Assembly (NCBI GenBank): GCA_051530055.1
Contig: CM121342.1
Span: 6,261,489 to 6,325,488 of the forward strand
DNA from: Neoechinorhynchus agilis
Taxonomy: Eukaryota; Animalia; Acanthocephala
DNA: 64,000 bases
Reading direction: 5' to 3'
The position numbers and the translations under genes are program-made. The notes beneath the pieces are model-generated. The model was not told the origin of the DNA and ran no database searches. It was given only the letters and a program-made list of their open reading frames with translations. Shown here piece after piece: positions 5,801-55,389 of this stretch (the stretch's first letter is position 1; the number at the start of each line of letters is the position of its first letter).

Positions 5801-8417
5801 CAATTCAGTGTTTTAAACGTGTGATGAAAGTTTCAGGATCTTAAATAATAGAAAACTTATAAGAAACTTTGATAAAGACGGACAAAATTATGCATTCGAA
5901 AAATAATCGGATTCAATAAATTCCTTTAATTCTCCGCCATAAAAAAAGAACATTAACAATTCAGTGTTTTAAACGTGTGATGAAAGTTTCAGGATCTTAA
6001 ATAATAGAAAACTTATAAGAAACTTTGATAAAGACGGACAAAATTATACATTCGAAAAATAATCGGATTCAATAAATTCCTTTGATTCTCCGCCATAAAA
6101 AAGAACATTAACAATTCAGTGTTTTAAACGTGTGATGAAAGTTTCAGGATCTTAAATAATAGAAAACTTATAAGAAACTTTGATAAAGACGGACAAAATT
6201 ATACATTCGAAAAATAATTCGGATTCAATAAATTCCTTTAATTCTCCGCCATAAAAAAAGAACATTAACAATTCAGTGTTTTAAACGTGTGATGAAAGTT
6301 TCAGGATCTTAAATAATAGAAAACTTATAAGAAACTTTGATAAAGACGGACAAAATTATACATTCGAAAAATAATCGGATTCAATAAATTCCTTTAATTC
6401 TCCGCCATAAAAAAAGAACATTAACAATTCAGTGTTTTAAACGTGTGATGAAAGTTTCAGGATCTTAAATAATAGAAAACTTATAAGAAACTTTGATAAA
6501 GACGGACAAAATTATCCATTCGAAAAATAATCGGATTCAATAAATTCCTTTAATTCTCTGCCATAAAAAAAGAACATTAACAATTCAGGGTTTTAAACGT
6601 GTGATGAAAGTTTCAGGATCTTAAATAATAGAAAACTTATAAGAAACTTTGATAAAGACGGACAAAATTATACATTCGAAAAATAATCGGATTCAATAAA
6701 TTCCTTTGATTCTTTGCCATAAAAAAGAACATTAACAATTCAGTGTTTTAAACGTGTGATGAAAGTTTCACGATTTTAAATAATAGAAAACTTATAAGAA
6801 ACTTTGATAAAGACGGACAAAATTATACATTCGAAAAATAATCGGATTCAATAAATTCCTTTAATTCTCCGCCATAAAAAAGAACATTAACAATTCAGTG
6901 TTTTAAACGTGTGAAGTTTCAGGATCTTATAATAGAAAACTTATAAGAAACTTTGATAAAGACGGACAAAATTATCATTCGAAAAATAATCGGATTCAAT
7001 AAATTCCTTATTCTCGCATAAAAAAGAACATTAACAATTCAGGGTTTTAAACGTGTGATGAAAGTTTCACGATTTTAAATAATAGAAAACTTATAAGAAA
7101 CTTTGATAAAGACGGACAAAATTATGCATTCGAAAAATAATCGGATTCAATAAATTCCTTTAATTTCCGCCATAAAAAAAGAACATTAACAATTCAGTGT
7201 TTTAAACGTGTGATGAAAGTTTCAGGATCTTAAATAATAGAAAACTTATAGGAAACTTTGATAAAGACGGACAAAATTATACATTCGAAAAATAATCGGA
7301 TTCAATAAATTCCTTTAATTCTCCGCCATAAAAAAGAACATTAACAATTCAGTGTTTTAAACGTGTGATGAAAGTTTCAGGATCTTAAATAATAGAAAAC
7401 TTATAAGAAACTTTGATAAAGACGGACAAAATTATCCATTCGAAAAATAATTCGATTCAATAAATTCCTTTGATTCTTTGATAAAAAAACATTAACAATT
7501 CAGTGTTTTAAACGTGTGATGAAAGTTTCAGGATCTAAAATAATAGAAAACTTATAGGAAACCTCGATAAAGACGGACAAAATTATACATTCGAAAAATA
7601 ATTCGGATTCAATAAATTCCTTTAATTCTCCACCATAAAAAAAGAACATTAACAATTCAGTGTTTTAAACGTGTGATGAAAGTTTCAGGATCTTAAATAA
7701 TAGAAAACTTATAGGAAACTTTGATAAAGACGGACAAAATTATGCATTCGAAAAATAATTCGGATTCAATAAATTCCTTTAATTCTCCACCATAAAAAAG
7801 AACATTAACAATTCAGTGTTTTAAACGTGTGATGAAAGTTTCAGGATCTTAATAATAGAAACTTATAGAAACTTTGTAAAGACGGACAATTATCGGATTT
7901 AATAAATCTTTATTCTTTGCCATAAAAAAGAACATTAACAATTCAGTGTTTTAAACGTGTGATGAAAGTTTCACGATTTTAAATAAGAGAAAACTTATAA
8001 GAAACTTTGATAAAGACGGACAAAATTATGCATTCGAAAAATAATCGGATTTTAATAAATTCCTTTGATTCTTTGCCATAAAAAGTTGCTGTAAGACGGA
8101 CAAAATTATCATTAAAAATATCGGATTAATAAATTCCTTTATTCTCCATAAAAAAGAACATTAACAATTCAGGGTTTTAAACGTGTGATGAAAGTTTCAC
8201 GATTTTAAATAAGAGAAAACTCATAAGAAGCTTTGATATAGACGGACAAAATTATGCATTAGAAAAATACTCGGATTGAATAAATTCCTTTAATTCTCCG
8301 CCATAAAAAAAGAACATTAACAATTCAGGGTTTTAAACGTGTGATGAAAGTTTCACGATTTTAAATAAGAGAAAACTTATAAGAAACTTTGATAAAGACG
8401 GACAAAATTATGCATTT
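2853..8417. repeat. Satellite C, 157 bp unit, ~35 copies
   Basis: tagaaaacttataagaaactttgataaagacggac at 2853, 3010, 3167 and onward to ~8417. Confidence 0.97.
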
Positions 8418-13236: not shown

Positions 13237-14414
13237 ACAATGCGAAGAGAGGAAATACCGAGCTTAGTGATTATTAGAATTCTTCACACGGAGTAAATAA
13301 CGTTTTTTTTCTCCACTAAAATCGTTTCGAATTTCTCGTAGAAAACTGAGTCTTTAGTTTTGGGAAAAAGCCGTTATTTACCGTCGGTTAAAGAGTTCAA
13401 AATAATAGACGTTTTGAGTTCGCTACTCGACATCCGATAAAGATGAAACGTTCTCGTCTTCCACATGAAATTTCGATATGCGAAGAGAGGAAATACCGAG
13501 CTTAGTGATTATTAGAATTCTTCACACGGAGTAAATAACGTTTTTTTCTCCACTAAAATCGTTTCGAATTTCTCGTAGAAAACTGAGTCTTTAGTTTTGG
13601 GAAAAAGCCGTTATTTACCGTCGGTTAAAGAGTTCAAAATAATAGACGTTTTGAGTTCGCTACTCGACATCCGATAAAGATGAAACGTTCTCGTCTTCCA
13701 CATGAAATTTCGATATGCGAAGAGAGGAAATACCGAGCTTAGTGATTATTAGAATTCTTCACACGGAGTAAATAACGTTTTTTTCTCCACTAAAATCGTT
13801 TCGAATTTCTCGTAGAAAACTGAGTCTTTAGTTTTGGGAAAAAGCCGTTATTTACCGTCGGTTAAAGAGTTCAAAATAATAGACGTTTTGAGTTCGCTAC
13901 TCGACATCCGATAAAGATGAAACGTTCTCGTCTTCCACATGAAATTTCGATATGCGAAGAGAGGAAATACCGAGCTTAGTGATTATTAGAATTCTTCACA
14001 CGGAGTAAATAACGTTTTTTTCTCCACTAAAATCGTTTCGAATTTCTCGTAGAAAACTGAGTCTTTAGTTTTGGGAAAAAGCCGTTATTTACCGTCGGTT
14101 AAAGAGTTCAAAATAATAGACGTTTTGAGTTCGCTACTCGACATCCGATAAAGATGAAACGTTCTCGTCTTCCACATGAAATTTCGATATGCGAAGAGAG
14201 GAAATACCGAGCTTAGTGATTATTAGAATTCTTCACACGGAGTAAATAACGTTTTTTTTCTCCACTAAAATCGTTCGAATTTCTCGTAGAAAACTGAGTC
14301 TTTAGTTTTGGAAAAAAGCCGTTATTTACCGTCGGTTAAAGAGTTCAAAATAATAGACGTTTTGAGTTCGCTACTCGACATCCGATAAAGATGAAACGTT
14401 CTCGTCTTCCACAT
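13237..14414. repeat. Satellite B, 237-238 bp unit, ~5 copies
   Basis: Unit starts at 13240, 13478, 13715, 13952, 14189. Confidence 0.95.
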
Positions 14415-14878
14415 GGATGTAACTGACGCCTCGCACTCATTTAGACTCATTGCATACTCCCGGGAAGCACACACAAAAAAGATTGCCCATCCCACCAATG
14501 TTTTTTAGTATTAAACGATGAAAGCACTCGATTTACCGTGGTTAACAGCGCACTGTTCGTCCTTGTCCCTGACCTTTTTTCCCAAACAAGGAAACTTTAT
14601 TCATCCCTCATTTTTCCTATGTGTTTCTAAGTTCACAGAAGTTCACATTTTCCGGTGTCTAATGTAAAACAAAAGACTGGAGTGTTTCCGCCCCAGTACT
14701 TTTTTTTCTTCTCAGCACTCAATAAGACAAGGTTCATATTTACGTTCGTCAAAAATGGGGGCAAACGCTGGCAAGCACAAGTCTATTTCGCATAGTGCCT
14801 TTGGGCGTTCTTTTCACCTGATCGATTCTGCTGATCAGCAACCTCTTACAGATACAAAGGAAGACGAAAATCAGAACG

Positions 14879-18192: not shown

Positions 18193-19239
18193 TCAAAAAT
18201 CAACAAACAATTCGGGCCTGTAACTTTCCTTCTCAATATGTATTGGAGTTTCTTTTAAGACCGGTCCGCGAGCTATTCTCGTTGGGACAATATTAGAAGG
18301 TATTTTATGAGAAAAAACGTCCATAAAAGAAATATCTTTAAACCATTTTGAGCTCTTAATTTCTTTGGACCCATTACATCCGAGTCTCCTTATAGGTTCT
18401 TTTCTCAGCAATCCGATATTAAACTCTCTCAGCTCTGGAGAATATCGTTTAGGAATCTTTAAGTTTGCTTTATTGATACTTTTCGCGATCGCATTTGTGT
18501 TCCGTCCACTAAATGGAACATTTCCTGTCATCATTTCATAAATGAGAACTCCTATTGCCCACCAATCGACCATTTTGCCATAGCCGATGCTTTGAAAGAT
18601 TTCTGGTGCCATATAGAACATTGTTCCACAAAAAGTAAAGCAATTCAAACCCGTCCTTCTCCCCAGACCAAAATCACAAAGCTTAATGTACCCATCTTTG
18701 GTTAGAAGAGTATTTTCCGGCTTGATGTCGCGATGAACTATTCCCATTGCATGTAGATACTCAAGAGCTAATACGAATTGAGCTATAACAAATTTAACTG
18801 ATGCTTCTGAAAACCTTTTTCTTTGCATTTCGGACATGAGGTTTCCGTATTTTAAATATTCAAGCCCAATATAAATATAGGAATTATCCATAAAAGCGAA
18901 ATCGAATCTGACGATATTTGGATGATTACACGATGCAGTGATTCGTAATTCACTAAGAACCTTTTCCAAGTTGCCAATTTCAACCAATTTTCGCTTATTT
19001 AATATTTTAAGGGCAATTTTCTTGTGTCCTTCTCCTTTAAAAGTTGCTAGAACGATTCGTCCAAACGCACCTTCTCCAACAGTCTTCTCAAGCCTGAATT
19101 GATGGATTTTTAAACGTGGATCACACTGTGTCCTGCACCAGCGCCATTCAAATTCCTCTTGTAATCTAATATCATCAATCGCATGGCGATCAGAGTCTAT
19201 TTCAATTATTGGTACTTTATTGTTTGAGAAATTCTGCAT
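18193..19239 (-). CDS. Intronless AGC kinase, divergent PKA catalytic-subunit-like
   Basis: GEGAFG, ALK, HRDIKPEN, DFG, TFCGT..YMAPE, VDWWAIG; ends in FVDF like the PKA FxxF tail. Confidence 0.93.
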   Translation of the reverse strand: MQNFSNNKVPIIEIDSDRHAIDDIRLQEEFEWRWCRTQCDPRLKIHQFRLEKTVGEGAFGRIVLATFKGEGHKKIALKILNKRKLVEIGNLEKVLSELRITASCNHPNIVRFDFAFMDNSYIYIGLEYLKYGNLMSEMQRKRFSEASVKFVIAQFVLALEYLHAMGIVHRDIKPENTLLTKDGYIKLCDFGLGRRTGLNCFTFCGTMFYMAPEIFQSIGYGKMVDWWAIGVLIYEMMTGNVPFSGRNTNAIAKSINKANLKIPKRYSPELREFNIGLLRKEPIRRLGCNGSKEIKSSKWFKDISFMDVFSHKIPSNIVPTRIARGPVLKETPIHIEKESYRPELFVDF

Positions 19240-19670: not shown

Positions 19671-21764
19671 TTAATCGCCGCTCTCCCGAGGTTTATCTGC
19701 CTCATCGGCAACAACATTCGAATCGATCACCTCCTCAATTGATTCACTCGTTTCCTCGGTTTCTCGTCGAGAGACATTCAAAGTCTCCGGTTGATCTATC
19801 ATTTCGCTGTCCAGGTTATTTTGCTGCATCTCAACTGAATGTTCATTGAAAGGTTCATTATTTACATTCAAGTTGTCCGGCAGCATAGGAGCAAAACCTG
19901 CGCAATTTTCATCGTTACCATTTAATTGGTCAGCGCAGGTCCCGCTCATGTTTAAGTTGGCAACTGATTGGATGCGCGATTGATTCAAACGACTTTCGCC
20001 GTCGATGCTGCTTGATTGGTTAGTGCCGGTTTCACCAATACGTAAAATCACGACGGATGAAATACTTAATTGATTGTGGGTAGATTCCATTGAATTTGAG
20101 TCGATTGAACCATTTAGAAATCGGTAATCAGGACCACCATTTATATATAATATTTCCTGCGACGTAGAAATTAAATCAGTACGATTTTCGCCGTCGATGC
20201 TTGATTGGTTAGCGCCGGTTCCACCAATACGTAAAATCACGACGGATGAAATACTTAATTGATTGTGGGTAGATTCCATTGAATTTGAGTCGAGGGAACC
20301 GTTTAGAAATCGGTAATCAGGACCACCATTTATATATAATATTTCCCGTCGCATAGAAGTAAAATCAGTACGATTTTCGTTGTCGATGCTGCTTGATTGG
20401 TTAGTGCCGGATCCACCAATACGAAAATTGGCGACTGATGAAACACTCCGTCGATTGCTGGATTCCGTATTTAAATATATTTGTTCGTTCGCTAGCGAAT
20501 GTATGCTCGAAGATTCCGTAAAAATCGGGCGCTGGACACTAATAACCGAATCGTCCTGGAGATTATTATTAGCATCCAGAATATCTTGAAGAAGAGAAGT
20601 TAATCCAATTTGACCTTCTTCGTTGCCACTTGACAAGTTTTCGCCGGTTCCAACTGCACCAAAGTCTTCAATTGATGAATCCCTCGATCGAATTGAAGGA
20701 TTTGCGTTCACAGTAACGCTATCGCTCGAAGATTCCGTAGAATTCGGGCGCTGGGCACTAATAATAGAATCGTATTGAGGACCGTTATTTACAACCAGAA
20801 TATCCTGCAGAAGGAATGTCAAACTCGTTTGACTTTCTTCATTTCCATTTGACTTGTTTTCGCCGGTTTCACCGGCGCTAAATTCTTTAACTGATGAATC
20901 CTTGGATCGAATTGGAGAATTCATGTTCACAGCAATGCTATCGCTCGAAGATTCCATACAATTCGGGCGCTGGGCACTAATAATAGAATCGTTCTGGGGA
21001 CCGTTATTTACACCCAGAATATCCTGAAGAAGAGAATTTAATCCAATTTGACTTTCTTCATTTCCATTTGACTTGTTTTCGCCGGTTTCACCGGCGATAA
21101 ATTCTTTAACTGATGAATCCTTGGATCGAATTGGAGGATTTGTGTTCACAGTAATGCAATAGTTTGTAGCTTCCTTAAAATTCGTGTCCTCGGCACTAAT
21201 AATGGAATCGTACTGGAGATTATTATTTGCACCCAGAATATCCTGAAGAAGAGAAGTTAATCCAGTTCGACTTCCTTCATTTCTACTTGACGGGGTTTCG
21301 CCGGTTTGAACTGCACCAAAGTCTTCAACTGATGAAACGTTTAAATGATGGGATAATCCCATGCTCGGCAAAATTTGATCAGTTGCCGCTGAATGAGGAG
21401 TTTTGTAAGAATCAGCAAGAGATTCGTAAGGTGTGCCATTATTGTAACTCATTATTTCTTGGAGCAATATAGTAAGATTTGTGGAAAAATCGCCAGTTGA
21501 TTGGTTATTTTTGATGGCATTGAATTCAGCGACAGGTGTAATCGTCGACGGACTCGGAGATTTATGTTCTTTAGTTCTTAAACAATCGTTTGTAGATTTA
21601 GATTCCATGGCAGATGAAACATCGTGATCGACAGTTACTTCAATATTAGGACTATTTTGCACATCGAGAATGTCTTGTAGAAGCGAGGTAAGATTATCAG
21701 ACTTTCTGGATTCATCTGAGTTGTCTCTGACATCCTCAGAATCGTTGGAATTATTGCGTTGCAT
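19671..21764 (-). CDS. Ser/Asn/Asp-rich, likely disordered repeat protein (~697 aa from ATG 21764) with recurring LTSLLQDILxVNN helix
   Basis: Long ORF with internal near-tandem repeats; pyrimidine-rich acceptor (ttttctag) 5 nt before the ATG. Confidence 0.75.
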   Translation of the reverse strand: MQRNNSNDSEDVRDNSDESRKSDNLTSLLQDILDVQNSPNIEVTVDHDVSSAMESKSTNDCLRTKEHKSPSPSTITPVAEFNAIKNNQSTGDFSTNLTILLQEIMSYNNGTPYESLADSYKTPHSAATDQILPSMGLSHHLNVSSVEDFGAVQTGETPSSRNEGSRTGLTSLLQDILGANNNLQYDSIISAEDTNFKEATNYCITVNTNPPIRSKDSSVKEFIAGETGENKSNGNEESQIGLNSLLQDILGVNNGPQNDSIISAQRPNCMESSSDSIAVNMNSPIRSKDSSVKEFSAGETGENKSNGNEESQTSLTFLLQDILVVNNGPQYDSIISAQRPNSTESSSDSVTVNANPSIRSRDSSIEDFGAVGTGENLSSGNEEGQIGLTSLLQDILDANNNLQDDSVISVQRPIFTESSSIHSLANEQIYLNTESSNRRSVSSVANFRIGGSGTNQSSSIDNENRTDFTSMRREILYINGGPDYRFLNGSLDSNSMESTHNQLSISSVVILRIGGTGANQSSIDGENRTDLISTSQEILYINGGPDYRFLNGSIDSNSMESTHNQLSISSVVILRIGETGTNQSSSIDGESRLNQSRIQSVANLNMSGTCADQLNGNDENCAGFAPMLPDNLNVNNEPFNEHSVEMQQNNLDSEMIDQPETLNVSRRETEETSESIEEVIDSNVVADEADKPRESGD

Positions 21765-23802
21765 ATTTCTAGAAAAAAAAAGCAAAGTTTAATTTATAAT
21801 TGAATGGAAGAGAAATTTAAGCCTAAATTTCGTATTAAATAGATTGCTTTACATATAACCGAGTGTATCGATCTGCGACCGTCACAAAAATACGAGGATG
21901 TTAACCGAACTTGTCAACCACGTCTTCTAAAAATAGAAGTGGAAGCGATGTGATTTATCTACAGTTGCGCAACACGGATGCAATCGAATATTATCGGCAA
22001 TTAAAAGGATTTAATCGTAGGTCGATAAGGTCTGAATTGATCACGTGGCTAATTTGTTCCGAGAAAATGAAAAAATCGATTTGGTAAGCGTTACAAAAAA
22101 TGTAATGTCTGAATTAGAATCCGGAACTGGTAAGCAAATTTTATCTTGTTTTAACGATTGCGATGTTCGCTGGAAACCACAAATTTTTATCCTCTAAGGA
22201 AAGTTGTCGCCTCCTTCATTCTACGGTCCAATTCTTTGTATAGTCTAAGGGCGGAGTAATCGAATGGCACGAAATCGTGGCCATATCTTAATTTAAAGAA
22301 TATTGTACAGGACGCATTACTAGGGAATGCTGTCAGCATTGTTTACCTTGACCTGCGGAATTTAAATCTTTTATTTAAACCATAAAGATTTTTATTACCG
22401 TTGTTCATTTGAACTGCAATTTTTGATGGTCACTGAAATCGCTGATCCATTTATACTTGTCGTTTTGGAAAACGTGAACGTTTACCTTTCTAATCTTTTA
22501 AGAAAATAAACCATAAAAGGCAAAGATTTGTAATGGACTAACATTTTTTAAGGGTTTGAAGATTGAATTGTTCATTTTCTATAATGAGGGTTCATTGAGA
22601 AAAAGATACATGGATTTATTATTTTTCGATACTTGAACAACCTTTATAAAGGCAAAAGATTGTGCCAAAGTATCGGATTCAATAAATAAATTAGTTCAAT
22701 TTTTTAAAGCCATGCAAAAAAAATATTTTTAGCTTTTAATGAATCATTTGAGAGAATTTAACACTCTTTATAATTGATTGATCGATGATTTGATCGGTAA
22801 TCTTGTTCGTAGATCGAACCCGAAAAATTCGCATCTTTAAAGGAAAACGATAAATTAGATGAGTAGAAATTTTCTAGTTGCGGACTCTATAAAATCTAAT
22901 AATGCATAACAATTTTTACTTTTTTTACAATTGTTTTATTAAATTTCACGCATTATTTCGTATTAACTATATATTTTCGATTTATATAAACGAACGTGTT
23001 TTTCTCTCGATAATTTAATTCTTTTCTTGATGCCAATTTTTCCGTCACCCGAGCTTTTATTTTGCTAACGACTTTTCACGTAATTTTGTTGAACTTAAAA
23101 AAACAAACCTTGTCTTATGTAATATTAAAAAAATTATGAAAATTTTTATGTTTTGACAAACTTGTTGCAAGGCGCAGCGATAATATTTAAAACGTTAATT
23201 TTTGTTTCATTAGTATTTTCGGATTTTGGAGTATAAACATAGGATTTCATTTCTAAAAAATCAATATAAAAATATTTAAAGTCAAGCTGGACGGTAACAT
23301 TTATTCTAAATTGAAGTGAGGCCTTTTTTCACGGCTGATTTTTTTAATAGACATCGGCCATTTATGTGGCTAAAGGAAGCGCATTATCCCTCCGGATTGT
23401 GCACTAAAAAATTCTTTATTTTATTAATTTTATAATCGACCAAAAGTGTCTTTAATTACATGATGGAAAGTTAATATAAAATCGTCACTAATTATTAGAT
23501 TTTGAACACATGAACCTCGTTCAAATCATTTCTCTTTTCCGCGCCATATTTCCAATTCTCCAACTTCGTCAGTATTTTTTATTCTCTATTCGTTATAAAT
23601 TTTGTGATATTTATTAAAAGATTTAATTATGATGGTGAACTGAAGGAAAAAATTATGAATATATTAATCAGAATTTTCGACCAATGCGTTGGTCTTCTTC
23701 AGTGATTGTTTTGCAAGTTTTTCCTAAATGAATATCCACACAATTTATTAAAAGATTTTCTATTCAAAAATGTCGATATGTGAGGAACTGGGGAATGTGA
23801 TT

Positions 23803-23886
23803 GGAATTATTGTTTAGAAGTCTACACCCGCGATTACGTCTTTAATAATCATTTACCCTGGGTGTAGACTTCTAAATAATAATTCC
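23803..23886. mobile_element. Short palindromic element, ~26 bp arms
   Basis: ggaattattgtttagaagtctacacc / ggtgtagacttctaaataataattcc. Confidence 0.65.
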
Positions 23887-24257
23887 AATTTTCTATTCGT
23901 ATCGTAAAAAAGTTGCAGAATTTATTTTTTTTGCCAATATTCAATAACCAAATAAAATATTAATTTTCTCTTCTTTGATAGTTCACAGAGGAAGCAGTCG
24001 TTTGTGTTTCCATTTATGTTATACTACTGATCAGTTCGAACGCATTCTTAATAGTTGAGTCTCTACTAACTCATCCATATCGTGTGAGGTCCTTTAATCG
24101 CAAAGCATAAATTCGGACGATAAACACTTAAATTTCAAGCTAGCTCATTTTTCAACGTCTGAAATTTAGGCTAACTGTGTAAAAAGGTCATTTAATCACT
24201 TTAATATCGACTAATTGATTTCTTTAGAACGTTAATCCCTATTTTAGATTTATAAAA

Positions 24258-25214
24258 ATGAATAATGCAAATCGACAATATGAATTTCAATTTAACCAAC
24301 GTCCACAGATTCTATCTTTTCCAACAGGTTACAGGATGGCAACTCCAGTCGGTTACCAACACTACAATGCTAACCAAACTATGATTCCAGTTCGACCACA
24401 AATGGTATCACCAGGATTAAGGCCGATAAATTCTTGTATGATTGATATGACACCGTATTACTACATGCCGAATAATATTTCAGCTCAGCATTGGAATCCA
24501 TTAATGTCGAGAAGACCGTTGCCAGTTCAACAAAATGCTGACTATTGTCTCATCAATACGGCAGCCTTGGACCCGATTGAACAGTTTCAGAGGACACTAC
24601 CTCCAATTCCAGTGTCCAGAGTACAACAATTGGATCAAGGTTATTGTACAATCACTCCAATGGAAAGAATACGTCCTCATCTAGAATTGCATAATGTTCA
24701 ACAAATAAATCCAGTTTGGCTAAAGAGACAAATAACTCAGTCGGAATTATCCGGTGGCCAATTTGCTCCAAAGAGCTCATCTCCAGAGAAAAGGTCGAAA
24801 GTGTTCCACGAACCAAATTCCTCAAGGCTTCTAAAACAACAACTGCCAACAAAGAGAACGGTCAGTAGTCAGTTCGCCGAACTATCTCAATCACCAAATG
24901 ATTTTGAAGTTAAGAAAGCGAGGATTCATTCACAATCTCCAAGACAGTTAAAGCGTTCCGTCAAATCTGATCTGACAGCACAATCCGAGTTCATGGAAAA
25001 GAAAATAGACGATTCGAATCGCCGAATTGATGCTCAAAATGCCAAAAACTCAAAAAAAGGAGTTATCAGCAATAGACCGTGTGGCTTTGGTCTTACGGTT
25101 GATGAACTTAACGAAGAATTTGTGAATATGTCCAGCGAGAGCAGGATGCATTTTGAATGGGTCGACGATTTTTTAGGTGGAGGAGGCTGCTATTCCCCAC
25201 TAGATTATTATTGA
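24258..25214 (+). CDS. Unknown 318-aa protein; Pro/Gln/Asn/Met-rich N-terminus, Ser/Lys-rich C-terminus
   Basis: Long ATG ORF in AT-rich surroundings, acceptor-like ttttag 11 nt upstream; no domain recognised. Confidence 0.65.
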   Translation: MNNANRQYEFQFNQRPQILSFPTGYRMATPVGYQHYNANQTMIPVRPQMVSPGLRPINSCMIDMTPYYYMPNNISAQHWNPLMSRRPLPVQQNADYCLINTAALDPIEQFQRTLPPIPVSRVQQLDQGYCTITPMERIRPHLELHNVQQINPVWLKRQITQSELSGGQFAPKSSSPEKRSKVFHEPNSSRLLKQQLPTKRTVSSQFAELSQSPNDFEVKKARIHSQSPRQLKRSVKSDLTAQSEFMEKKIDDSNRRIDAQNAKNSKKGVISNRPCGFGLTVDELNEEFVNMSSESRMHFEWVDDFLGGGGCYSPLDYY

Positions 25215-25856
25215 TAAATATAATTTGTTTATCGTCAACAACTACTTTATTACGGTTTTCTAATAGCTTGGGCAAATCCTAATCAGGTTTTGTACATAAA
25301 TCATGACCATCGCTTATTCTTATACTAAATGTCTCCGGAGCCGATGAATTTGATCCGAATCATGTTTGGGGTGAACTAACAACACAAAAAGATAAAAACA
25401 TGTCTTTTCGAATTTGTAAAATAGTCCAATTTTACAAATATATTGTTTTAGAAGTTCTAAATATGTCGATTGTTCGCAATGCGAGTTCCAATTCCATCAA
25501 CGTGCACTTCTATTATTGAGAACGAAAAGTGAACCTCAAACGACGGATTTTTATTTTTCAATTATATGTTTTTAAATTGTAAACATTGCCAAAATATCCA
25601 CCCAACGAAAACTTAAAAATCATATATAGAAAATCGTTCCGGGTGATAAAGTTCGAATTGTGGTGATGGTAATCCTTGATGAAAAATATTTTTTGTTGAA
25701 TTAAAATATTTCACAAGGAAAACCCACCTTATCAATTAGTTTTAGTGAGTTTTGCGCAAGTGCAAATACAAATAAAATTAAATTTTATCATCTTAGACTT
25801 TTAAATATTCACGGCAGCACGCTTAATTTTTTATCCTTTTTTATAACCTTCATTTT

Positions 25857-27888
25857 GGGTGACGGAAAAATTGGCATAACTTAAAACAGCAAATATTCTT
25901 TTTTTAAAGAAAAGAATTAAATTATCAAGAGAAAAACACGTCCGTTTATATAAATCGAAAATATATAGTTAATACGAAATAATGCGTGAAATTTAATAAA
26001 AAAAATGCAAAAGTATTCCTTAGAGGATAAAAATTTGTGGTTTCCAGCGAACATCGCAATCGTTAAAACAAGATAAAATTTGCTTACCAGTTCCGGATTC
26101 TAATTCAGACATTACATTTTTTGTAACGCTTACCAAATCGATTTTTTCATTTTCTCGGAACAAATTAGCCACGTGATCAATTCAGACCTTATCGACCTAC
26201 GATTAAATCCTTTTAATTGCCGATAATATTCGATTGCATCCGTGTTGCGCAACTGTAGATAAATCACATCGCTTCCACTTCTATTTTTAGAAGACGTGGT
26301 TGACAAGTTCGGTTAACATCCTCGTATTTTTGTGACGGTCGCAGATCGATACACTCGGTTATATGTAAAGCAATCTATTTAATACGAAATTTAGGCTTAA
26401 ATTTCTCTTCCATTCAATTATAAATTAAACTTTGCTTTTTTTTCTAGAAATATGCAACGCAATAATTCCAACGATTCTGAGGATGTCAGAGACAACTCAG
26501 ATGAATCCAGAAAGTCTGATAATCTTACCTCGCTTCTACAAGACATTCTCGATGTGCAAAATAGTCCTAATATTGAAGTAACTGTCGATCACGATGTTTC
26601 ATCTGCCATGGAATCTAAATCTACAAACGATTGTTTAAGAACTAAAGAACATAAATCTCCGAGTCCGTCGACGATTACACCTGTCGCTGAATTCAATGCC
26701 ATCAAAAATAACCAATCAACTGGCGATTTTTCCACAAATCTTACTATATTGCTCCAAGAAATAATGAGTTACAATAATGGCACACCTTACGAATCTCTTG
26801 CTGATTCTTACAAAACTCCTCATTCAGCGGCAACTGATCAAATTTTGCCGAGCATGGAATTATCCCATCATTTAAACGTTTCATCAGTTGAAGACTTTGG
26901 TGCAGTTCAAACCGGCGAAACCCCGTCAAGTAGAAATGAAGGAAGTCAAACGAGTTTGACATTCCTTCTTCAGGATATTCTGATTGTAAATAACGGTCCC
27001 CAGAACGATTCGGTTATTCGTGCCCAGCGCCCGAATTCTACGGAATCTTCGAGCGATCGCATTACTGTGAACGCAAATCCTTCAATTCGATCGAGGGATT
27101 CATCAGTTAAAGAATTTAGCGCCTATGAAACCGGCGAAACCCCGTCAAATATCAACGAAGAAAGTCAAATTTGATTAACTTCTTCAGAATATTCTGGGTG
27201 TAAATAACGGTCCTCAGTACGAATCACTGTAGGGACTTTTATATTAAATTTCCATCATGTAATTAAAGACACTTTTGGTCGATTGTAAAATTAATAAAAT
27301 AAGAATTTTTTAGTGCACGAATTGATATCAGCATAAATTTAGCCGCTATATTTGTTAAAATTGTAAAAAATGGGAAAACGAAAAGTAACAAATGCGGACC
27401 CAATGATTTAAATTCATAATTATCGAAAGCTTAAATTCGAAAAATAATAGCCAGTTTTTTGTTGCAATTTTGTATTGAAACATAAAATAGTCAATCTTTT
27501 AGCGCCGACAATTAGAATTGAAGGCTAGGCATGCGATCTTAGAATCCGGAGGGATAATGCGCTTCCTTTAGCCACATAAATGGCCGATGTCTATTAAAGA
27601 AATCAGCCGTGAAAAAAGGCCTCACTTCAATTTAGAATAAATGTTACCGTCCAGCTTGACTTTAAATATTTTTATATTGATTTTTAAAAATGAAATCCTA
27701 TTATTATACTCCAAAATCCGAAAATACTAATGAAACAAAAATTAACGTTTTAAATATTATCGCTGCGCCTTGCAACAAGTTTGTCAAAACATAAAAATTT
27801 TCATAATTTTTTTAATATTACATAAGACAAGGTTTGTTTTTTTAAGTTCAACAAAATTACGTGAAAAGTCGTTAGCAAAATAAAAGCT
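25857..27888 (+). repeat. Inverted, rearranged duplicate of ~20750-23490
   Basis: 25857-26012 = rc 23050-22925; 26016-~27224 = rc 22201 into the coding region, with internal deletion; 27230-27320 = rc ~23490-23400; 27545-27888 = rc ~23395-23052. Confidence 0.9.
26452..27174 (+). pseudogene. Truncated paralogue (240 aa) of the 19671-21764 repeat protein
   Basis: First ~165 aa nearly identical; internal repeats deleted; early stop at caaatttga, with remnants of the next repeat out of frame. Confidence 0.75.
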
Positions 27889-28770: not shown

Positions 28771-31182
28771 ATGTCGCGAAAAAAGGAACTTAAATCGGAA
28801 TCAAACATTATCCGAGAAAGAGATACGAACATTTTACCACAGAACGCTGGTTCACAAGAGGAGGTTTTGATTAATCCGTTCGAATGTGAGGTTATTGATG
28901 CAAATCGAATAACGACTTCTCCTTCGTTAATGGCAACAGAAACCGAACAAATTCAGTTGTTAGAAGACAATAAGTTTAACAGGTTCACTAAGCTTCTCAA
29001 GGACATTTTGTGTGTCAACAATGAAGAAATGATCGCAAAATTTAAAGCCATAGCAGAGAAAAGCAGCGAAAAATCCAATCTAAAGCGAACTAAAAATAAA
29101 AATGGAAAAAGAAAAAAGAGGAGGAAGGAAGAGATAAAAGATGAGGCTAAATTTCTAGTCACTGAGAAAAGCGATTGCGACGTTTTGGATGTTTCTAACA
29201 AGGAAAAGTCATCGCTGACAAAGATCGTAGATCGTCCACAAACGAAGGGTTTGCAAGAAGACAAAATAGTTATTAATTTTACAAGTCTTCTAAAAGAAAT
29301 TTTAAATGTTAACAATGAAGAAATTACTGCAGACATTCATGTCGAGAATAAGAGAAGTGATAAAACTCCATTACCAAAAACAAGTGCCTCTACTTTGGTG
29401 ATTCAAAACATTGAATGGCAAGAAACAAGTCTTAAAAATTTAGCTAATGAGTCATCTGATTCTGTTGATCAAAAGAAAATTGATCCTGAATATGTTAATG
29501 ATTTTAAGCGATTCGTAACGCTTAAAACGATTATAAGGGATATTTTGGATGTTCAAAATCCTGGAGCAGACGATAGGTCATCAGAGAAAATTTCCAAGCC
29601 AAAATGCAAGTTTTCTTTTCCAGCAACGACCGAAGGTGGCGTATTGGATAAGTGCTTAAAATCGTCCGGATATATTTCCGAAGAATCAAAGGGAACAGAA
29701 CCCGAGTATCTGATTGAGAGTGTTATCACTGAAAATCGGCGGAATATTTCTCAAAAATCCCAAAATACAACAACAACAACTCACAAGGGAAAACTAACGT
29801 TTACCACCCAATTCGATGTAAGAACTGCATTGGCTTATATTCCAGGAGAAATGCGAAGATCGAACCCAAGAAAAGAAGCGTCTTTTGTAAGCGAGTCTTT
29901 ACACTCATTTGACATGGATATCACTCAGCCTATAAGAATGTCTTTGGACGAACCTGACGATAGATCATCCGAGTCTTTGAAATCAACCATTAACATTGAT
30001 AAAAATCATGCTAAAAGTCATCAAACTCTCACTGGAATTTTACGAGAAGTTATCGATGTCAACAGCGCAGAACCGATCGAAGATGTTCTCGTTGCGGTTA
30101 GAAGCAAAGATTTATTTTCAACCGATAACAATTCCAATATGCATTTGAAAGACGATACTGAAACCAAGAAAACAATACAAACAAAAATGGAAACTAAATC
30201 ATCAGAAATGAGTAACAGGAAAAAATCTGACGGAGATGAACAAAGTGATACTCTCAGTGAAATCTTAAGGGAAGTATTAAGAATACAGAACGATGAGTCG
30301 ATTTTCTGGACGGAAACCGAAGCAGACAGCACCGATGAACGTTTGTCGCAAAAGCAGTTACCGAACAAGAAGATAAAATCAATGTCGAAAGCGACGAATG
30401 TTACTCGGAGTCAGGATAAACCTTTAAAAAAGCGAACATTCGCTAATTTCTCAACTGAAATGGCAGAAATCTGCAAAGAAATACCCGTACAGCAAAACAT
30501 TATCGAAACGAAATCCGTTGTTGATCAAAAGGTTCATCACGACTATAAACCAAATGTTAACTTAAAGGAGACCGATCATCTTAAAGACCTTTTAATCGAT
30601 ATTCTGAAAGTAAATAATGAAGATGCTATTGATAGTTGTAAAAATGAAAAGTGTAAGAGTCCACAAGGGCCACACAGTTCAAAAGTTCCCGTAAAATCAA
30701 TTAATGTAACAGTATTATCCAATGAGCCACAAACAAAATCAATGACACAATTATCAACGGAAATAGCGATAGAGCAGACGGATAAATCAGCAGTAACGAT
30801 GTTAAAGGAGTCATTTAATGAAGATAAGGACAATATTGAACTTGAAGATGTTTCTTCATTTTGTGAAGGATCAACTGACGACCATCATGCCGTTAAAATC
30901 ACAAACCACCGAATATCCGCAATTCCGATTTCACTGCAAATTCCAGCACCAGAAAAGCATATTAAATTAAAGGATAAACAATTATCAAATTTAATCAAAG
31001 AAGTTATTAACGTTAACAATTCAACCGCTTTAAGCTTTACAACTCACAAGAAACAATTGAGTGATAATTCTTTTAACCATGAGAAAAGTATAACGAAAAA
31101 TGAACATAAAGTGACCCCAATTTCTGAAGAAATTGTTAGAACGTCCAAGTCCCAGCAAGGAGAAACAAAGAACGATCAGTAA
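28771..31182 (+). CDS. 803-aa Lys/Glu/Ser/Thr-rich, likely disordered protein with seven xLxxLLx[DE]ILxVNN-type helices
   Basis: Long ORF with FTKLLKDILCVNNEE, FTSLLKEILNVNNEE, LKTIIRDILDVQN, LTGILREVIDVNS, LSEILREVLRIQN, LKDLLIDILKVNN, LSNLIKEVINVNN. Confidence 0.85.
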   Translation: MSRKKELKSESNIIRERDTNILPQNAGSQEEVLINPFECEVIDANRITTSPSLMATETEQIQLLEDNKFNRFTKLLKDILCVNNEEMIAKFKAIAEKSSEKSNLKRTKNKNGKRKKRRKEEIKDEAKFLVTEKSDCDVLDVSNKEKSSLTKIVDRPQTKGLQEDKIVINFTSLLKEILNVNNEEITADIHVENKRSDKTPLPKTSASTLVIQNIEWQETSLKNLANESSDSVDQKKIDPEYVNDFKRFVTLKTIIRDILDVQNPGADDRSSEKISKPKCKFSFPATTEGGVLDKCLKSSGYISEESKGTEPEYLIESVITENRRNISQKSQNTTTTTHKGKLTFTTQFDVRTALAYIPGEMRRSNPRKEASFVSESLHSFDMDITQPIRMSLDEPDDRSSESLKSTINIDKNHAKSHQTLTGILREVIDVNSAEPIEDVLVAVRSKDLFSTDNNSNMHLKDDTETKKTIQTKMETKSSEMSNRKKSDGDEQSDTLSEILREVLRIQNDESIFWTETEADSTDERLSQKQLPNKKIKSMSKATNVTRSQDKPLKKRTFANFSTEMAEICKEIPVQQNIIETKSVVDQKVHHDYKPNVNLKETDHLKDLLIDILKVNNEDAIDSCKNEKCKSPQGPHSSKVPVKSINVTVLSNEPQTKSMTQLSTEIAIEQTDKSAVTMLKESFNEDKDNIELEDVSSFCEGSTDDHHAVKITNHRISAIPISLQIPAPEKHIKLKDKQLSNLIKEVINVNNSTALSFTTHKKQLSDNSFNHEKSITKNEHKVTPISEEIVRTSKSQQGETKNDQ

Positions 31183-34615: not shown

Positions 34616-36600
34616 TTCTGAAAATATGTTATATTTCGATTTATATTTAGTCCAAAAAACGGTTTCTTCGCCGGACTTGTTAAAATTCTTATGACCGTAT
34701 TAAATTTTTATATGCTTAATTGCATCGAGGATTCGACATTCCCTTTCGGAATCGCTAATTCGCCGATAAAAATAGCTGGTTACATTTCCAACCTTGGTAA
34801 AAAGTCCGACAATAGAGAAAGTTTATAAAAAATGAAGGATGAATAGGAGAAAATATTGATTTGTTCCGGATTGAATTGCGGCGACGAAAAATGTTTTTTT
34901 TTGCAATTCAGTCGCATTATCCAAAAAATTTGCTTGCCTTCTTCAAAAGTTTCTCTCTCTAAAGCTTTCGTTTCCAAGTTAAATAGGGATCGTAGGTTAT
35001 AAATCTATGTGATTTTTAAAATACAAACATCCGATGGATGCAGATAATGGAATTTTTGGTCAATTTCTAGATTATAAACAAATTCGTCGCCTTTACAATT
35101 TTCTGATCTTTTTTTTCTTTATAAACATAGTCCAGGTTTTTGGTTTTGATACAAATTCTTTTATTTTATCAATAAGAAACTCGTATATTTTACGGATAAA
35201 AATCGTACTAAACACATAAAATGCACCAGATTAAGCGTCTAAGAGAATATGTGGAAGTGGGGGAAAATTCTATATCAAAGACGGATTTCTTGACGGTGAA
35301 CAATTCACAGTGAAATATTTCAAGTGCTTCTTTGATATAAAATTTTTCCCCATTGAAACTTTCAATTGAGATCAAATGTGAAGAACAAATTCTGTACTTA
35401 CTACTTCACTTGACCGGGATAATTCTTCGTTAAGAGAGTCAATGGACACTCTTAAATCATCATTAGTCTTTAAGAGTCTTAAACCGACAGTCGCTGCTAA
35501 TTCAAGATCTTTTTCCTTCTAAAAGTTTTAACGTCAAGTTAATGTTTTACTTGATAGTTGTGTACCTCTTTGAGCAAGTAGAAGGTTGCTTGTGGATCAT
35601 CGAAATTTGCCGTCATTTGTCTTAACCGAGATCCACATTGCACTAAAATCCACCATGATTTTTTGTGTCTTTGTTTAATGTTGATGTGTGTGGGTTGGAG
35701 CGACGAAGTGGAAAACAAAGCGAATACACTCATTGCATTGTTTAAAAAAAATAAGAGTGGCGAAAAGTGCACGAGGATATATCTTTGGTCAATATAAAAT
35801 CTACTTTTTTGAAAAGGAAATGTACTATTTCTTCAATTGAAGATAACGGAACCAACAATGCTGAATATAGGAGTGTTTTTAATGTTCTAAAGTACCCGCG
35901 AGTCTGATGATTGATTATGAAGCTACCTTTTCGAGTTGGATTATTAAAAGAATAACTTCGAGCATTTTCCTTAGGCATCTTAGCTTGAAAAAGTTGTACT
36001 ACGATTGAGTGTTGCATTTTAAAAGAACGACTCTCACTGACGTACGGATTACAAAGGTTGACAAATAGAGTTTCCGTCAATAAATACACTCAAAAGTCTA
36101 ATCCGAAATCGGTTATGGTCATTTGCCTGCGTCGAAAGTTAAACAGGAATACAATGCTCTCCATTGGTGTAATTTAATTAATCTCATTACAACGAAAACC
36201 TCTTAATGGCTTATTTCGAAGACCATAAAACGGTCGAACTAAATTCATTTTCTGTCTAATTCAAAATGGAGTTGTTCCGTCTTCTTAAGAAGCTGACATG
36301 TGCACCTTTGAGACTCTAAATTAACTAAACATTGACCCATCATTATCCTTTTATTCGCTGCAAGGGTCGAATGCGACGAGCGAAAGGTCAACATTGCCTA
36401 ATATATCGGTGCTCTATAAGAAAATATCGATTGAGCAGCTTTTGGGGACCGCATTTTCTGTGCACCACTCTTTTAATCAACCTTAAAATGTATAAAATGA
36501 AAAATGGTAGCAGAAAATCCAAGGCGATTTGTTGTTAAAACGATTCATGCCGCTACTTGGGAATAAATTGCCCAAAATAAATGATTTTTTAAAGTCTTCA

Positions 36601-36674
36601 CCCGCGATTAATGATTATTTCGATTAAAGACGTTCTGAGAACCTCGTCGGGAATAAATAATTATTAATCGCGGG
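36601..36674. mobile_element. Short palindromic element
   Basis: cccgcgattaatgattattt / aaataattattaatcgcggg. Confidence 0.6.
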
Positions 36675-39054: not shown

Positions 39055-41985
39055 TCAAATGAATAATTATATAGATAATTTTATTGGGAAAATGCAAAAA
39101 TCTTGTAATTTTTTAAAGAAATGAAGATTTTAACGGCACAATTCTTTGTGGAGAAATTCGAAACGCGACTAAAATCGACGTGGTTATATTCGATTTCAAA
39201 AAAAAAGATTTTAGAGAATCCTTGGACTTCGCATGTGAGAAGGAATTACCTCGACTGTTTTTCAACAAGAGGATTTTTGTATTCTTCATGTACAAAAGTT
39301 ACGTTGAAATTAATAATTACATGGATAATTTTATTGGGAAATGCTCAAATTTTCCACCTTGGCCGAATGAAAATTTAAGGACACAATTTTTTTGACTAGA
39401 TGTGAAATCTTTAGGATTTGAAGAAATTCGAAACGCGACTAAAATCGACGTGGTTACATTCGATTTCCAAAAAAAAGATTTTAGAGAATCCTTTGAATGT
39501 GTGAAAATTACCTCGACTATTTTTCAACGAGAGGATTTTCGGACGAATCTCAATGTTTGCGCTTATTTTGATATTGAAAATTATGTATAAAAGTTACATT
39601 GAAGTATTGGGAAATGCTCAAATTTTCCACCTTGGCCGAATGAAAATTTAAGGACACAATTTTTTTGACTAGATGAGAAATCGTTAGGATTTGAAGAAAT
39701 TCGAAACGCGACTAAAATCGACGTGGTTACATTCGATTTCCAAAAAAAAGATTTTAGAGAATCCTTTGAATGTGTGAAAATTACCTCGACTATTTTTCAA
39801 CGAGAGGAATTTCGGACGAATCTCAATGTTTGCGCTTATTTTGATATTGAAAATTATGTATAAAAGTTACATTGAAATATTGGGAAATGCTCAAATTTTC
39901 CACCTTGGCCGAACGAAAATTTAAGGACACAATTTTTTTGACTAGATGAGAAATCGTTAGGATTTGAAGAAATTCGAAACGCGACTAAAATCGACGTGGT
40001 TACATTCGATTTCCAAAAAAAAGATTTTAGAGAATCCTTTGAATGTGTGAAAATTACCTCGACTATTTTTCAACGAGAGGATTTTCGGACGAATCTCAAT
40101 GTTCAGTTATTGAAATTAATAATTACATTGAAATATTGGGAAATGCTCAAATTTTCCACCTTGGCCGAATGAAAATTTAAGGACACAATTTTTTTGACTA
40201 GATGAGAAATCGTTAGGATTTGAAGAAATTCGAAACGCGACTAAAATCGGCGTGGTTACATTCGATTTCCAAAAAAAAGATTTTAGAGAATCCTTGGAAT
40301 GTGTGAAAATCACCTCGACTGTTTTTCAACAAGAGGATTTTTGTATTCTTCATGTACAAAAGTTACGTTGAAATTAATAATTACATGGATAATTTTATTG
40401 GGAAATGCTCAAATTTTCCACCTTGGCCGAACGAAAAATAATTTAAGGACACAATTTTTTTGACTAGATGAGAAATCGTTAGGATTTGAAGAAATTCGAA
40501 ACGCGACTAAAATCGGCGTGGTTACATTCGATTTCCAAAAAAAAAGATTTTAGAGAATCCTTGGAATGTGTGAAAATCACCTCGACTATTTTCCAACGAG
40601 AGGAATTTCGGACGAATCTCAATGTTTGCGCTTATTTTGATATTGAAAATTATGTATAAAAGTTACATTGAAATATTGGGAAATGCTCAAATTTTCCACC
40701 TTGGCCGAACGAAAAATAATTTAAGGACACAATTTTTTTTAACTAGATGAGAAATCTTTAGGATTTGAAGAAATTCGAAACGCGACTAAAATCGACGTGG
40801 TTACATTCGATTTCCAAAAAAAAGATTTTAGAGAATCCTTGGAATGTGTGAAAATTACCTCGACTATTTTTCAACGAGAGGATTTTCGGACGAATCTCAA
40901 TGTTTGCGCTTATTTTGTTATTGAAAATTATGTATAAAAGTTACATTGAAGTATTGGGAAATGCTCAAATTTTCCACCTTGGCCGAACGAAAAATAATTT
41001 AAGGACACAATTTTTTTGACTAGATGAGAAATCGTTAGGATTTGAAGAAATTCGAAACGCGACTAAAATCGACGTGGTTACATTCGATTTCCAAAAAAAA
41101 GATTTTAGAGAATCCTTGGAATGTGTGAAAATTACCTCGACTATTTTTCAACGAGAGGATTTTCGGACGAATCTCAATGTTTGCGCTTATTTTGTTATTG
41201 AAAATTATGTATAAAAGTTACATTGAAGTATTGGGAAATGCTCAAATTTTCCACCTTGGCCGAATGAAAATTTAAGGACACAATTTTTTTAACTAGATGA
41301 GAAATCTTTAGGATTTGAAGAAATTCGAAACGCGACTAAAATCGACGTGGTTACATTCGATTTCCAAAAAAAAGATTTTAGAGAATCCTTGGAATGTGTG
41401 AAAATTACCTCGACTATTTTTCAACGAGAGGATTTTCGGACGAATCTCAATGTTTGCGCTTATTTTGTTATTGAAAATTATGTATAAAAGTTACATTGAA
41501 GTATTGGGAAATGCTCAAATTTTCCACCTTGACCGAATGAAAATTTAAGGACACAATTTTTTTGACTAGATTAGAAATCTTTAGGATTTGAAGAAATTCG
41601 AAACGCGACTAAAATCGGCGTGGTTACATTCGATTTCCAAAAAAAAGATTTTAGAGAATCCTTGGAATGTGTGAAAATTACCTCGACTATTTTTCAACGA
41701 GAGGATTTTCGGACGAATCTCAATGTTTGCGCTTATTTTGATATTGAAAATTATGTATAAAAGTTACATTGAAATATTGGGAAATGCTCAAATTTTCCAC
41801 CTTGACCGAATGAAAATTTAAGGACACAATTTTTTTGACTAGATTAGAAATCTTTAGGATTTGAAGAAATTCGAAACGCGACTAAAATCGGCGTGGTTAC
41901 ATTCGATTTCCAAAAAAAAGATTTTAGAGAATCCTTGGAATGTGTGAAAATCACCTCGACTATTTTTCAACGAGAGGATTTTGGT
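39055..41985. repeat. Satellite F, ~256-277 bp unit, ~11 copies
   Basis: gaaattcgaaacgcgactaaaatcg recurs ~39152, 39423, 39696, 39969, 40225, 40491, 40770, 41047, 41320, 41593, 41868. Confidence 0.95.
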
Positions 41986-53889: not shown

Positions 53890-55389
53890 CTATTCAACAT
53901 CCTCAACGTCAAGAAACGATGAGCGGTCTATTTTTTCCCCGGCATCATCGTTACTTTGATATAAAGAAGATCTTCTTAGACTAGTTTCAAAATTTTCACT
54001 TATTTCACTAATTCTCGCCGAAATGCGTTTTGAATAAGAAAATCTTTGAGACTCATGAACTTCAGTGACGGGTTGAGGTGTTTCTATTGATTCCCTGATG
54101 GATTCCATCAATACTGACGATATTTTCGATTGTCTTTCCTCAAGCGATGTCGTCCATAATTCGTATTGACCTGCAAAAAACATAGGACTGCTCAAACACA
54201 TCATCCCTGGTAATGATTGTCCTACTAATAATTTTAAAGCGGATAATCCAGCGGTGCTGATCATCGAAAAGGTTAGTTTTTCACTAAGGCGAACTGCGGA
54301 TGTCATTGTATGACCTCCTGCGAGAACAGTAAACACTCCTTGACTCGTTGCAAGACTTAAATTCATTAAGATCTGTTTTGTAGATTCAGAGAACTTTTCT
54401 GTTTCGAAAACACCGACCGGTCCATTCCAAAAGACAGTTTTCGCTCTTTTAATCGCATTTTCCACGGTTGCAACAAACATTGGACCAACATCCATGGCTG
54501 CAAATCCATCACTGACTCCATTTCGTACGTCTTCCACGATTATATCTTCCCGTTCAATTCTCATATTAAGACATACGAGATCTCTAGGAAGATAAATAGG
54601 AATATTCTTCTCCTTTGCTTTTTTTAATATCGTGATAACTTCCTTCTCTCCTTCTGGGTCATATAATGTCTGCTCGATCTTTGTCTTTAGCAAAACATGA
54701 AGAAAAGGCATAGCTAAAGCACCACCGATCGCAAGTTCGTCAACGTAATCTAGTAAATCAGACATCAAATTTAATTTCTCAAACTTCACTCCTCCAATAA
54801 TTGCCAAAAATGGTCTTTTGGGAGCATTTCTGAGTGATCTAAAATCTCCCAATTCCTTTTCCATCAATAATCCCATCACGTTTAAAAGTGCACCAACTCC
54901 CACGACTGAACTATGCTCTTTGTGTACCACACTAAAAGCATCGTTAACAAATATATCACAAAGATTCGTTAATTTAGAACGAAAATCCGCAACTGTTTCA
55001 CCATCTTCAGTCTCTTCCTTAAAAAATCTTATATTATCCAGAACAACTATTTCTCCAGTTCTATAGGCAGTCAAAGTGTCCGTTATGCAATTCCAATCGA
55101 TACTATCAATGAATCTTACACGCTTATGGATCTTTTTTGAAAGCAATTCAGCGGCGTATAAAAGGCTTAATCTGTCGTCTTTACCTTCAGGATTACCCAT
55201 GTGACTCACGATAACTATATATTTTGGTTTGGTTGCCGATATGAGGTTAATTGTTGGCAAAATCTGATCTATCCTAGCTTCAAGCGTCGCACCCGACTGA
55301 TCATTCAAATCTACTCGAACCATAACTCGTGCTTCTTTAAGATCTAAGTTCCTTACACTAAATGCCTCGAACATTAAACCACTGCTCAT
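53890..55389 (-). CDS. PGK: Divergent intronless phosphoglycerate kinase with ~100-aa C-terminal extension
   Basis: RVDLN, SHMGNP, DNIRF, FVNDAF, MDVGP, VFWNGPVGVFE. Confidence 0.93.
   Translation of the reverse strand: MSSGLMFEAFSVRNLDLKEARVMVRVDLNDQSGATLEARIDQILPTINLISATKPKYIVIVSHMGNPEGKDDRLSLLYAAELLSKKIHKRVRFIDSIDWNCITDTLTAYRTGEIVVLDNIRFFKEETEDGETVADFRSKLTNLCDIFVNDAFSVVHKEHSSVVGVGALLNVMGLLMEKELGDFRSLRNAPKRPFLAIIGGVKFEKLNLMSDLLDYVDELAIGGALAMPFLHVLLKTKIEQTLYDPEGEKEVITILKKAKEKNIPIYLPRDLVCLNMRIEREDIIVEDVRNGVSDGFAAMDVGPMFVATVENAIKRAKTVFWNGPVGVFETEKFSESTKQILMNLSLATSQGVFTVLAGGHTMTSAVRLSEKLTFSMISTAGLSALKLLVGQSLPGMMCLSSPMFFAGQYELWTTSLEERQSKISSVLMESIRESIETPQPVTEVHESQRFSYSKRISARISEISENFETSLRRSSLYQSNDDAGEKIDRSSFLDVEDVE

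Follow-up and report, generated by a model that had tools for sequence, protein, structure and literature searches.

The 64,000-nucleotide stretch of Neoechinorhynchus agilis DNA analysed here, referred to as the window (64 kb; assembly GCA_051530055.1, contig CM121342.1, positions 6,261,489 to 6,325,488 of the forward strand), carries the gene G697 on its minus strand and, close by, a 2-kb chromosomal piece in which the 5' half of this gene and its upstream DNA genuinely recur, inverted and with the order of the parts rotated. Positions 25857-27888 on the plus strand correspond to three pieces of the minus-strand locus 20986-23491, as confirmed by BLASTN, gapless repeat finding and global alignments of the plus-strand copy against the minus-strand source. 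The source runs U1-U2-X-gene along the minus strand, U1 and U2 being blocks of upstream DNA and X a segment that the copy lacks, whereas the copy runs U2-gene 5' half-U1 (i.e. blocks A-B have become B-A). The copy starts 2,375 nt (2.4 kb) from the source in inverted, head-to-head orientation, and its outer ends map to source positions 23050 and 23052, leaving 23051 as the sole source base missing between them. The features of source, spacer and copy are as follows, in window coordinates.

23052-23491, minus strand: source U1, with clear homology over 23052-23481, extending to about 23491 probably through the microhomology ATTAGTG
23051: opening point, the single source base present at neither end of the copy
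22923-23050, minus strand: source U2, whose upstream end (23050) matches the left end of the copy
22202-22922, minus strand: segment X, source only, about 715-721 nt, missing from the copy
20986-22201, minus strand: source segment g, duplicated, made up of the proximal upstream region together with the 5' half of the G697 coding sequence
19671-21764, minus strand: source gene G697, 697 aa, single exon, present in the list of open reading frames (ORFs) and as a called gene in the public assembly
23482-25856, plus strand: spacer between the inverted arms, unique sequence, holding an orphan 318-aa ORF (24258-25214, plus strand) and a 90-nt palindrome (23800-23889)
25857-26012, plus strand: copied U2 as a whole (source 23050-22923), including 29 extra nt; the left insertion junction J1 lies at 25856/25857
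25857-25877, plus strand: start of copied U2, source 23050-23030, 100% identity
25878-25906, plus strand: 29 nt found only in the copy, within copied U2
25907-26012, plus strand: remainder of copied U2, source 23028-22923, 95.3% identity
26016-26947, plus strand: near-identical tract, source 22201-21269, one substitution and one 1-T indel in 932 nt
26949-27225, plus strand: diverged repeat part of the copy, in two stretches (26949-27098 and 27099-27225)
26949-27098, plus strand: first diverged stretch, source unit 20829-20680, 93% identity
27099-27225, plus strand: last repeat unit, ending at position 127 of its 219 nt and matching every source unit at ~85%, its register therefore ambiguous (20986, 20767 or 20548)
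26452-27174, plus strand: truncated paralog ORF, 240 aa (244 aa as called in the public assembly)
27226-27236, plus strand: 11-nt filler at junction J2, ACTGTAGGGAC
27237-27888, plus strand: copied U1 as a whole, placed downstream of the truncated gene and ending at the right insertion junction J3 (27888/27889)
27237-27318, plus strand: first part of copied U1, source 23481-23399, 96.4% identity
27319-27542, plus strand: 224 nt found only in the copy, within copied U1
27543-27888, plus strand: second part of copied U1, source 23398-23052, 98.6% identity, E = 5e-173

Structure, divergence and polarity of the copy

G697 contains coding tandem repeats with units of 219 nt and 189 nt, and a motif LLQDILxVNN recurs in its product. 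The protein matched no Pfam family and had no relative among 5.8 billion proteins, by which measure it is an orphan. The 240-aa, 318-aa and 697-aa proteins and a neighbouring protein kinase, looked up exactly and used in homologue searches, led to one contig only, CM121342.1 of GCA_051530055.1. The 219-nt repeat makes the 3' limit of the duplicated gene segment ambiguous, the registers 20986, 20767 and 20548 being equivalent. Within the repeat the copy skips two units (438 nt), such that 26947 maps to 21269 and 26949 to 20829.

A prior description made from the letters alone (the sequence-only reading) had proposed a permuted inverted duplication in the order U2, gene, U1, with outer ends at source 23050 and 23052; both points are borne out, the coordinates being right to a few bases. 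The gene segment that it placed at 22201 to ~20750 is indeed copied, but as a mosaic with a repeat jump and not as a simple collinear block. Four differences were absent from that description, namely the loss of X, the 29-nt and 224-nt inserts, the two skipped units and the cutting of the last unit at 127/219. A further copy of U1 or U2 nearby, which it had held would reveal a simple tandem origin, was looked for and not found in the window, and the repeat searches likewise detected no additional gene fragment there. The flanks of both loci are without residual homology, their Smith-Waterman scores falling inside the shuffle distribution.

Judging from the alignments, the duplicate is genuine and not a false assembly duplication, because indels of 715-721, 224 and 29 nt, the 438-nt repeat difference and 1.4-7% substitutions set the two copies apart; it is also not very recent. 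The stretch is gap-free, with no Ns in the window. Divergence is spread unevenly along the copy. The tract at 26016-26947 carries one substitution in 932 nt, against the 11 that the remaining unique segments carry in 557 nt (Fisher p = 1.5e-4), and this ~99.9% identical tract is flanked exactly by the X indel on the left and by the two-unit repeat jump on the right. It is read as having been re-homogenised by gene conversion within a collinear block, since it is uniform between two structural breaks, and the inverted arms therefore still interact. They are long and alike enough for recombination.

The direction of the event can be read from the continuity of the two loci. The source is uninterrupted at all three junctions: the gene runs past its breakpoint, the spacer continues past U1 and U1 leads directly into U2. 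Unrelated sequence flanks the copy, and its final repeat unit is severed mid-unit. Because the source is continuous at every junction and the last unit of the copy is cut, the copy is, on the evidence of its structure, the derived locus, and duplication went from source to copy. The converse, that the copy is the ancestral unit, was considered and rejected on the same observations.

In coding terms the copy is a truncated paralog that has lost the distal upstream region. A G-to-T change gives the TGA at which its ORF stops, 51 nt short of the breakpoint and with a 5-nt deletion after it. The diverged repeat holds four synonymous and six non-synonymous differences. The 3' end of the paralog looks like a decaying pseudogene, while its 5' end appears to be held identical by conversion. 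The public 244-aa call adds a 9-nt first exon, ATGCAAAAG, at 26005-26013; this exon is probably spurious because its ATG is missing at the source, which reads ATTGTAAAA...

The junctions differ in character. J1 reads ...CTTCATTTT/GGGTGACGG... and J3 reads ...AAAAGCT/TTCTAATTT...; inspection of both revealed neither microhomology nor a target-site duplication. J2, which joins the gene to U1, reads ...ACGAATC/ACTGTAGGGAC/TTTTATATT... At the source, the sequence directly past the gene breakpoint is TATTATTAGTGCCC, identical in all three repeat registers, and the sequence directly ahead of U1 is AATAATTAGTGACGA. These have ATTAGTG in common (a 7-nt microhomology, with 9/11 nt shared), and a 7-mer is shared by only 1.1% of random 15-nt window pairs from the region (p about 0.011 for the J2 microhomology). 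Since ATTAGTG would so rarely be shared by chance, the head-to-tail junction J2 was probably made by microhomology-mediated joining or template switching. Templates for the 29-nt and 11-nt fillers were sought locally and none was found nearby. The opening point 23051 shows neither hairpin nor palindrome, and the DNA fold of the surrounding +/-40 nt gives z = 0.73.

Routes to the rotated order

The junctions show that the duplication passed through an intermediate in which the gene breakpoint was joined head-to-tail to the start of U1 (J2) and which then broke at a single point, 23051. The duplicated unit measures about 2.5-2.9 kb and comprises U1, U2, X and the 5' half of G697; its copy is now found on the upstream side of the source. 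The copy subsequently lost X, gained the insertions of 29 and 224 nt and a nonsense mutation, shifted by two units in the 219-nt repeat and had its 932-nt block re-homogenised by gene conversion. In a unit of the size given, two independent breakpoints would come to lie no more than 1 bp apart with a chance of ~1e-3 (our own estimate, 3/2500), and it is because such abutment by chance is so rare that both outer ends are taken to stem from one break in a closed head-to-tail unit. The sequence as it stands fails to tell a free circle from a chromosomal head-to-tail junction, which leaves an extrachromosomal intermediate unproven. Symbolic block simulation and an exhaustive search over rearrangement operations tested which routes yield the observed order, and the probabilities given to the routes rest partly on our own priors about reinsertion sites, not on data from N. 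agilis.

The most likely route, to which we assign a tentative probability of roughly 40%, is a tandem duplication followed by an inversion and by a flip between the inverted arms. A chromosomal tandem duplication of [U1 U2 X gene-5'] would first have made the head-to-tail junction J2. One simple inversion with breaks at U1/U2 and at spacer/right flank would then have produced J1 and J3 from a single break. Homologous recombination between the inverted arms would finally have flipped the segment between them, giving the intact gene its full upstream region back.

Simulated with blocks, tandem duplication, inversion and flip yield the observed order exactly, with no trimming. In the exhaustive search a single linear operation never sufficed, two-step linear paths consisted only of two independent copies with coincidentally abutting ends, and all clean, purely chromosomal paths consisted of tandem duplication, inversion and flip, where the inversion could break either unit and no coincidence was needed. 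The outer ends abut automatically by this route because both come from a single break. On simulation and search alike, the claim of the sequence-only reading that the abutment is less well explained by a tandem origin thus fails for a local inverted copy. Its proposal of a duplication mediated by extrachromosomal circular DNA (eccDNA) holds insofar as the rotated order and abutting ends are real; a free circle is not shown by them, as the chromosomal route gives the same order. The 2.4-kb distance, the inverted orientation, the recombining arms and the tandem-prone region favour a local route. Tandem arrays cover 34% of the window, and G697 itself contains two.

Several points weigh against the chromosomal succession. 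By the exhaustive search it needs three successive events on one lineage compared with two for a circle. Its intermediate parts the intact gene from U1 and may have been deleterious, and no remnant of the tandem intermediate was found in the window, where the tandem arrays have units of 81-487 bp, not 2.5 kb. The evidence comes from one assembly, the proteins of the locus being found on one contig only. In addition, the random reinsertion of free circles, on which the preference for a local route partly leans, is a prior argument and not a measurement.

Next in order, though doubtful, is an extrachromosomal circle in the germline, or else a looped template copied a single time round, ~2.7 kb in size and reinserted beside its source in a probable acanthocephalan. 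In the form of a free circle, [U1 U2 X gene-5'] would have been closed by microhomology (J2), opened at 23051 and end-joined into a break between spacer and right flank. It asks for the fewest steps, two, and has the rotated order and 1-bp abutment as its textbook signature (PMC7188851, PMC7450558); the J2 microhomology and the blunt, homology-free insertion junctions agree with published cases (PMC7450558), and extra flanking duplicates are absent from the window. However, a landing site 2.4 kb from the source is left unexplained for a diffusing circle, the published cases being distant or interchromosomal, no circle has been observed, and a chromosomal head-to-tail junction would have left the same sequence.

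[quoted passage not shown] A strand coming from the spacer would switch at 23050 to the opposite strand, copy U2, X and the gene 5' half, switch at ATTAGTG to the start of U1, copy as far as its own entry point at 23051 and return to the original template. This would be a single event that accounts for the local position of the copy. Inverted switches over 2-3 kb with microhomology, as seen at J2, are typical of the mechanism, which Chicote et al. invoke for the insertion step of their cases (PMC7450558). Against this, J1 and J3 are without visible microhomology, templated insertions from the vicinity are absent, with no local source for either the 29-nt or the 11-nt filler, and a halt exactly at the entry point is our own conjecture and not an established property of such replication.

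The explanations beyond tandem duplication with inversion and flip, circle and template switching are improbable even when taken together. Inverted duplications of [U2 X gene-5'] and of [U1] that arose independently yet landed side by side are the sole two-step linear paths of the block search, but they are very improbable, since they require both source ends within 1 bp (~1e-3) and adjacent inserts; for this and for its variant, a larger duplicate trimmed by deletions, the window holds no trimmed remnants. Equally far-fetched is capture by a transposable element (Helitron, DIRS-like or another with a circular form) or an RNA-mediated retrocopy, although elements with circular intermediates do have abutted ends and the 5' end of U2 could conceivably be a transcription start. 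The copy, with termini GGGTGACGG... and ...AAAAGCT, has no terminal inverted repeats, target-site duplication, Helitron-type termini or other copy in the window, and no transposase or reverse-transcriptase ORFs lie nearby. The same searches came up empty for the parts of source and copy: neither terminal inverted repeats nor a target-site duplication nor other copies in the window exist for segment X, the 224-nt insert, U1 and U2, and a transposable-element origin was rejected. The retrocopy was rejected as well, there being no poly(A) and the upstream DNA (U1) coming after, i.e. 3' of, the gene fragment. Finally, a false inverted duplication or chimeric join in the assembly, conceivable for a structure known from a single assembly, is hardly credible, as artefactual duplicates are collinear and nearly identical, whereas here large indels, a repeat difference and 1.4-7% substitutions separate the copies in sequence without Ns.

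Were the circle or looped template true, the locus would offer, resolved to the base pair, a rare instance outside the vertebrates of a gene duplicated through a circle, one that made a truncated paralog and inverted arms exchanging sequence and able to flip the orphan gene between them. By whichever route it arose, it is a clean, nucleotide-resolved and small circularly permuted duplicate from a poorly studied lineage. It documents how a truncated paralog of a lineage-specific repeat protein arose and has partly decayed, with ongoing conversion between the arms. Because such events have been described before, in the genomes of cattle and humans, no long-standing question is opened by it.

Genes and repeats in the surrounding window

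G697 is neighboured by an 803-aa ORF (28771-31182, plus strand), to which its overall similarity is slight (BLASTP E = 0.004). Both are rich in a short motif, roughly [ST]xLL[QKR][DE]IL.V[NQ]N, and the 803-aa ORF, like G697, matched no Pfam family (the search of 5.8 billion proteins covered G697, not the 803-aa ORF). The two appear, from this shared motif content, to form a lineage-specific family of motif-repeat proteins. Adjoining G697 is an intronless ORF (18193-19239, minus strand) encoding a 348-aa AGC-type protein kinase, with a best match of 40% over 56% of its length.

The palindrome within the spacer is near-perfect, its 30-nt arms being 97% complementary around a 30-nt loop. It may be a small element resembling a miniature inverted-repeat transposable element, because partial matches to it exist 13 kb away (36580-36619).

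About 15 tandem arrays make up the ~34% of the window given above, with units of 81-487 nt that are mostly 88-99% identical (e.g. 2853-8416, 39332-41982 and 60441-63998); a 91-nt satellite with 39 copies continues past the window end. The arrays at 1542-2852 and 13240-14415, ~10 kb apart and with periods of 467 and 237 nt, have a common start of the consensus unit, ATGCGAAGAGAGGAAATACCGAGC..., and may belong to a dispersed satellite family or a segmental duplication.

A complete PGK domain (E = 7e-95), extended C-terminally by ~100 aa, is encoded by another intronless ORF (53890-55389, minus strand; 499 aa). Its identity to the proteins of the representative library is no more than 30-47%, with the best matches in the acanthocephalans Neoechinorhynchus agilis (47%) and Pomphorhynchus laevis (39%) and in multi-PGK-domain mollusc proteins, and on these identities it seems to be a divergent paralog of PGK and not the housekeeping enzyme. 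From the acanthocephalan matches of this single protein a syndermatan origin of the DNA would be probable. A homeodomain protein (58732-59709, minus strand) contains an 81-nt tandem repeat at 59294-59602 (3.8 copies, 97% identical). The window also encodes a dynein light chain and a HAP1_N protein, which together with the homeodomain protein mark it as animal DNA; Rfam families and tRNAs were not detected in it.

Comparison with known duplications

For the KIT region of colour-sided cattle (Cs29 and Cs6), translocations or duplications by way of a circular intermediate were reportedly described by Durkin and colleagues in 2012. Rotated order with abutting ends is the signature of circle-mediated duplication in the literature (PMC7188851, PMC7450558; cattle colour-sidedness PMC12235870), and rotated duplicates attributed to circular intermediates are described for cattle KIT, Cs29/Cs6 (PMC12235870, with a discussion in PMC7450558), and for human segmental duplications (PMC7188851, PMC7450558). 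The cattle events and the present locus share a rotated segment order, outer ends adjacent in the source and a short microhomology at the fusion. The KIT events span hundreds of kb and are interchromosomal or involve a homology-driven return to the source, whereas the unit studied here measures 2.5-2.9 kb and lies inverted at a distance of only 2.4 kb. Because the copy is small, inverted and near its source, unlike cattle KIT, a purely chromosomal route is equally available to it.

Tandem duplication followed by inversion and non-allelic homologous recombination (NAHR) between inverted low-copy repeats is a general mechanism of structural variation. Compared with that mechanism, the locus would require three sequential events with no intermediate allele observed; it has in common with it a head-to-tail junction with microhomology, kb-sized inverted arms that are ~99.9% identical and evidence of gene conversion.

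The human eccDNA duplications (Takahashi & Innan 2020, PMC7188851) and circular segmental-duplication pairs (Chicote et al. 2020, PMC7450558) show the same A-B to B-A flip, breakpoints with only microhomology or short indels and no flanking duplicates, and the locus passes the published false-positive filter (PMC7188851) in that there is no extra flanking duplicate within the 64 kb. Four of the sequence features associated with eccDNA are therefore present (rotation, abutment, microhomology at the fusion junction and absence of flanking duplicates); a non-tandem, distant acceptor site, which Chicote et al. list among the features of their cases (PMC7450558), is lacking here. The false-positive scheme of the human studies leaves out the succession of tandem duplication, inversion and flip, which is applicable to local inverted copies and leaves an identical signature in them. 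The main value of the locus thus lies in the caution that it offers to scans in which rotated order and abutting ends are taken as proof of eccDNA.

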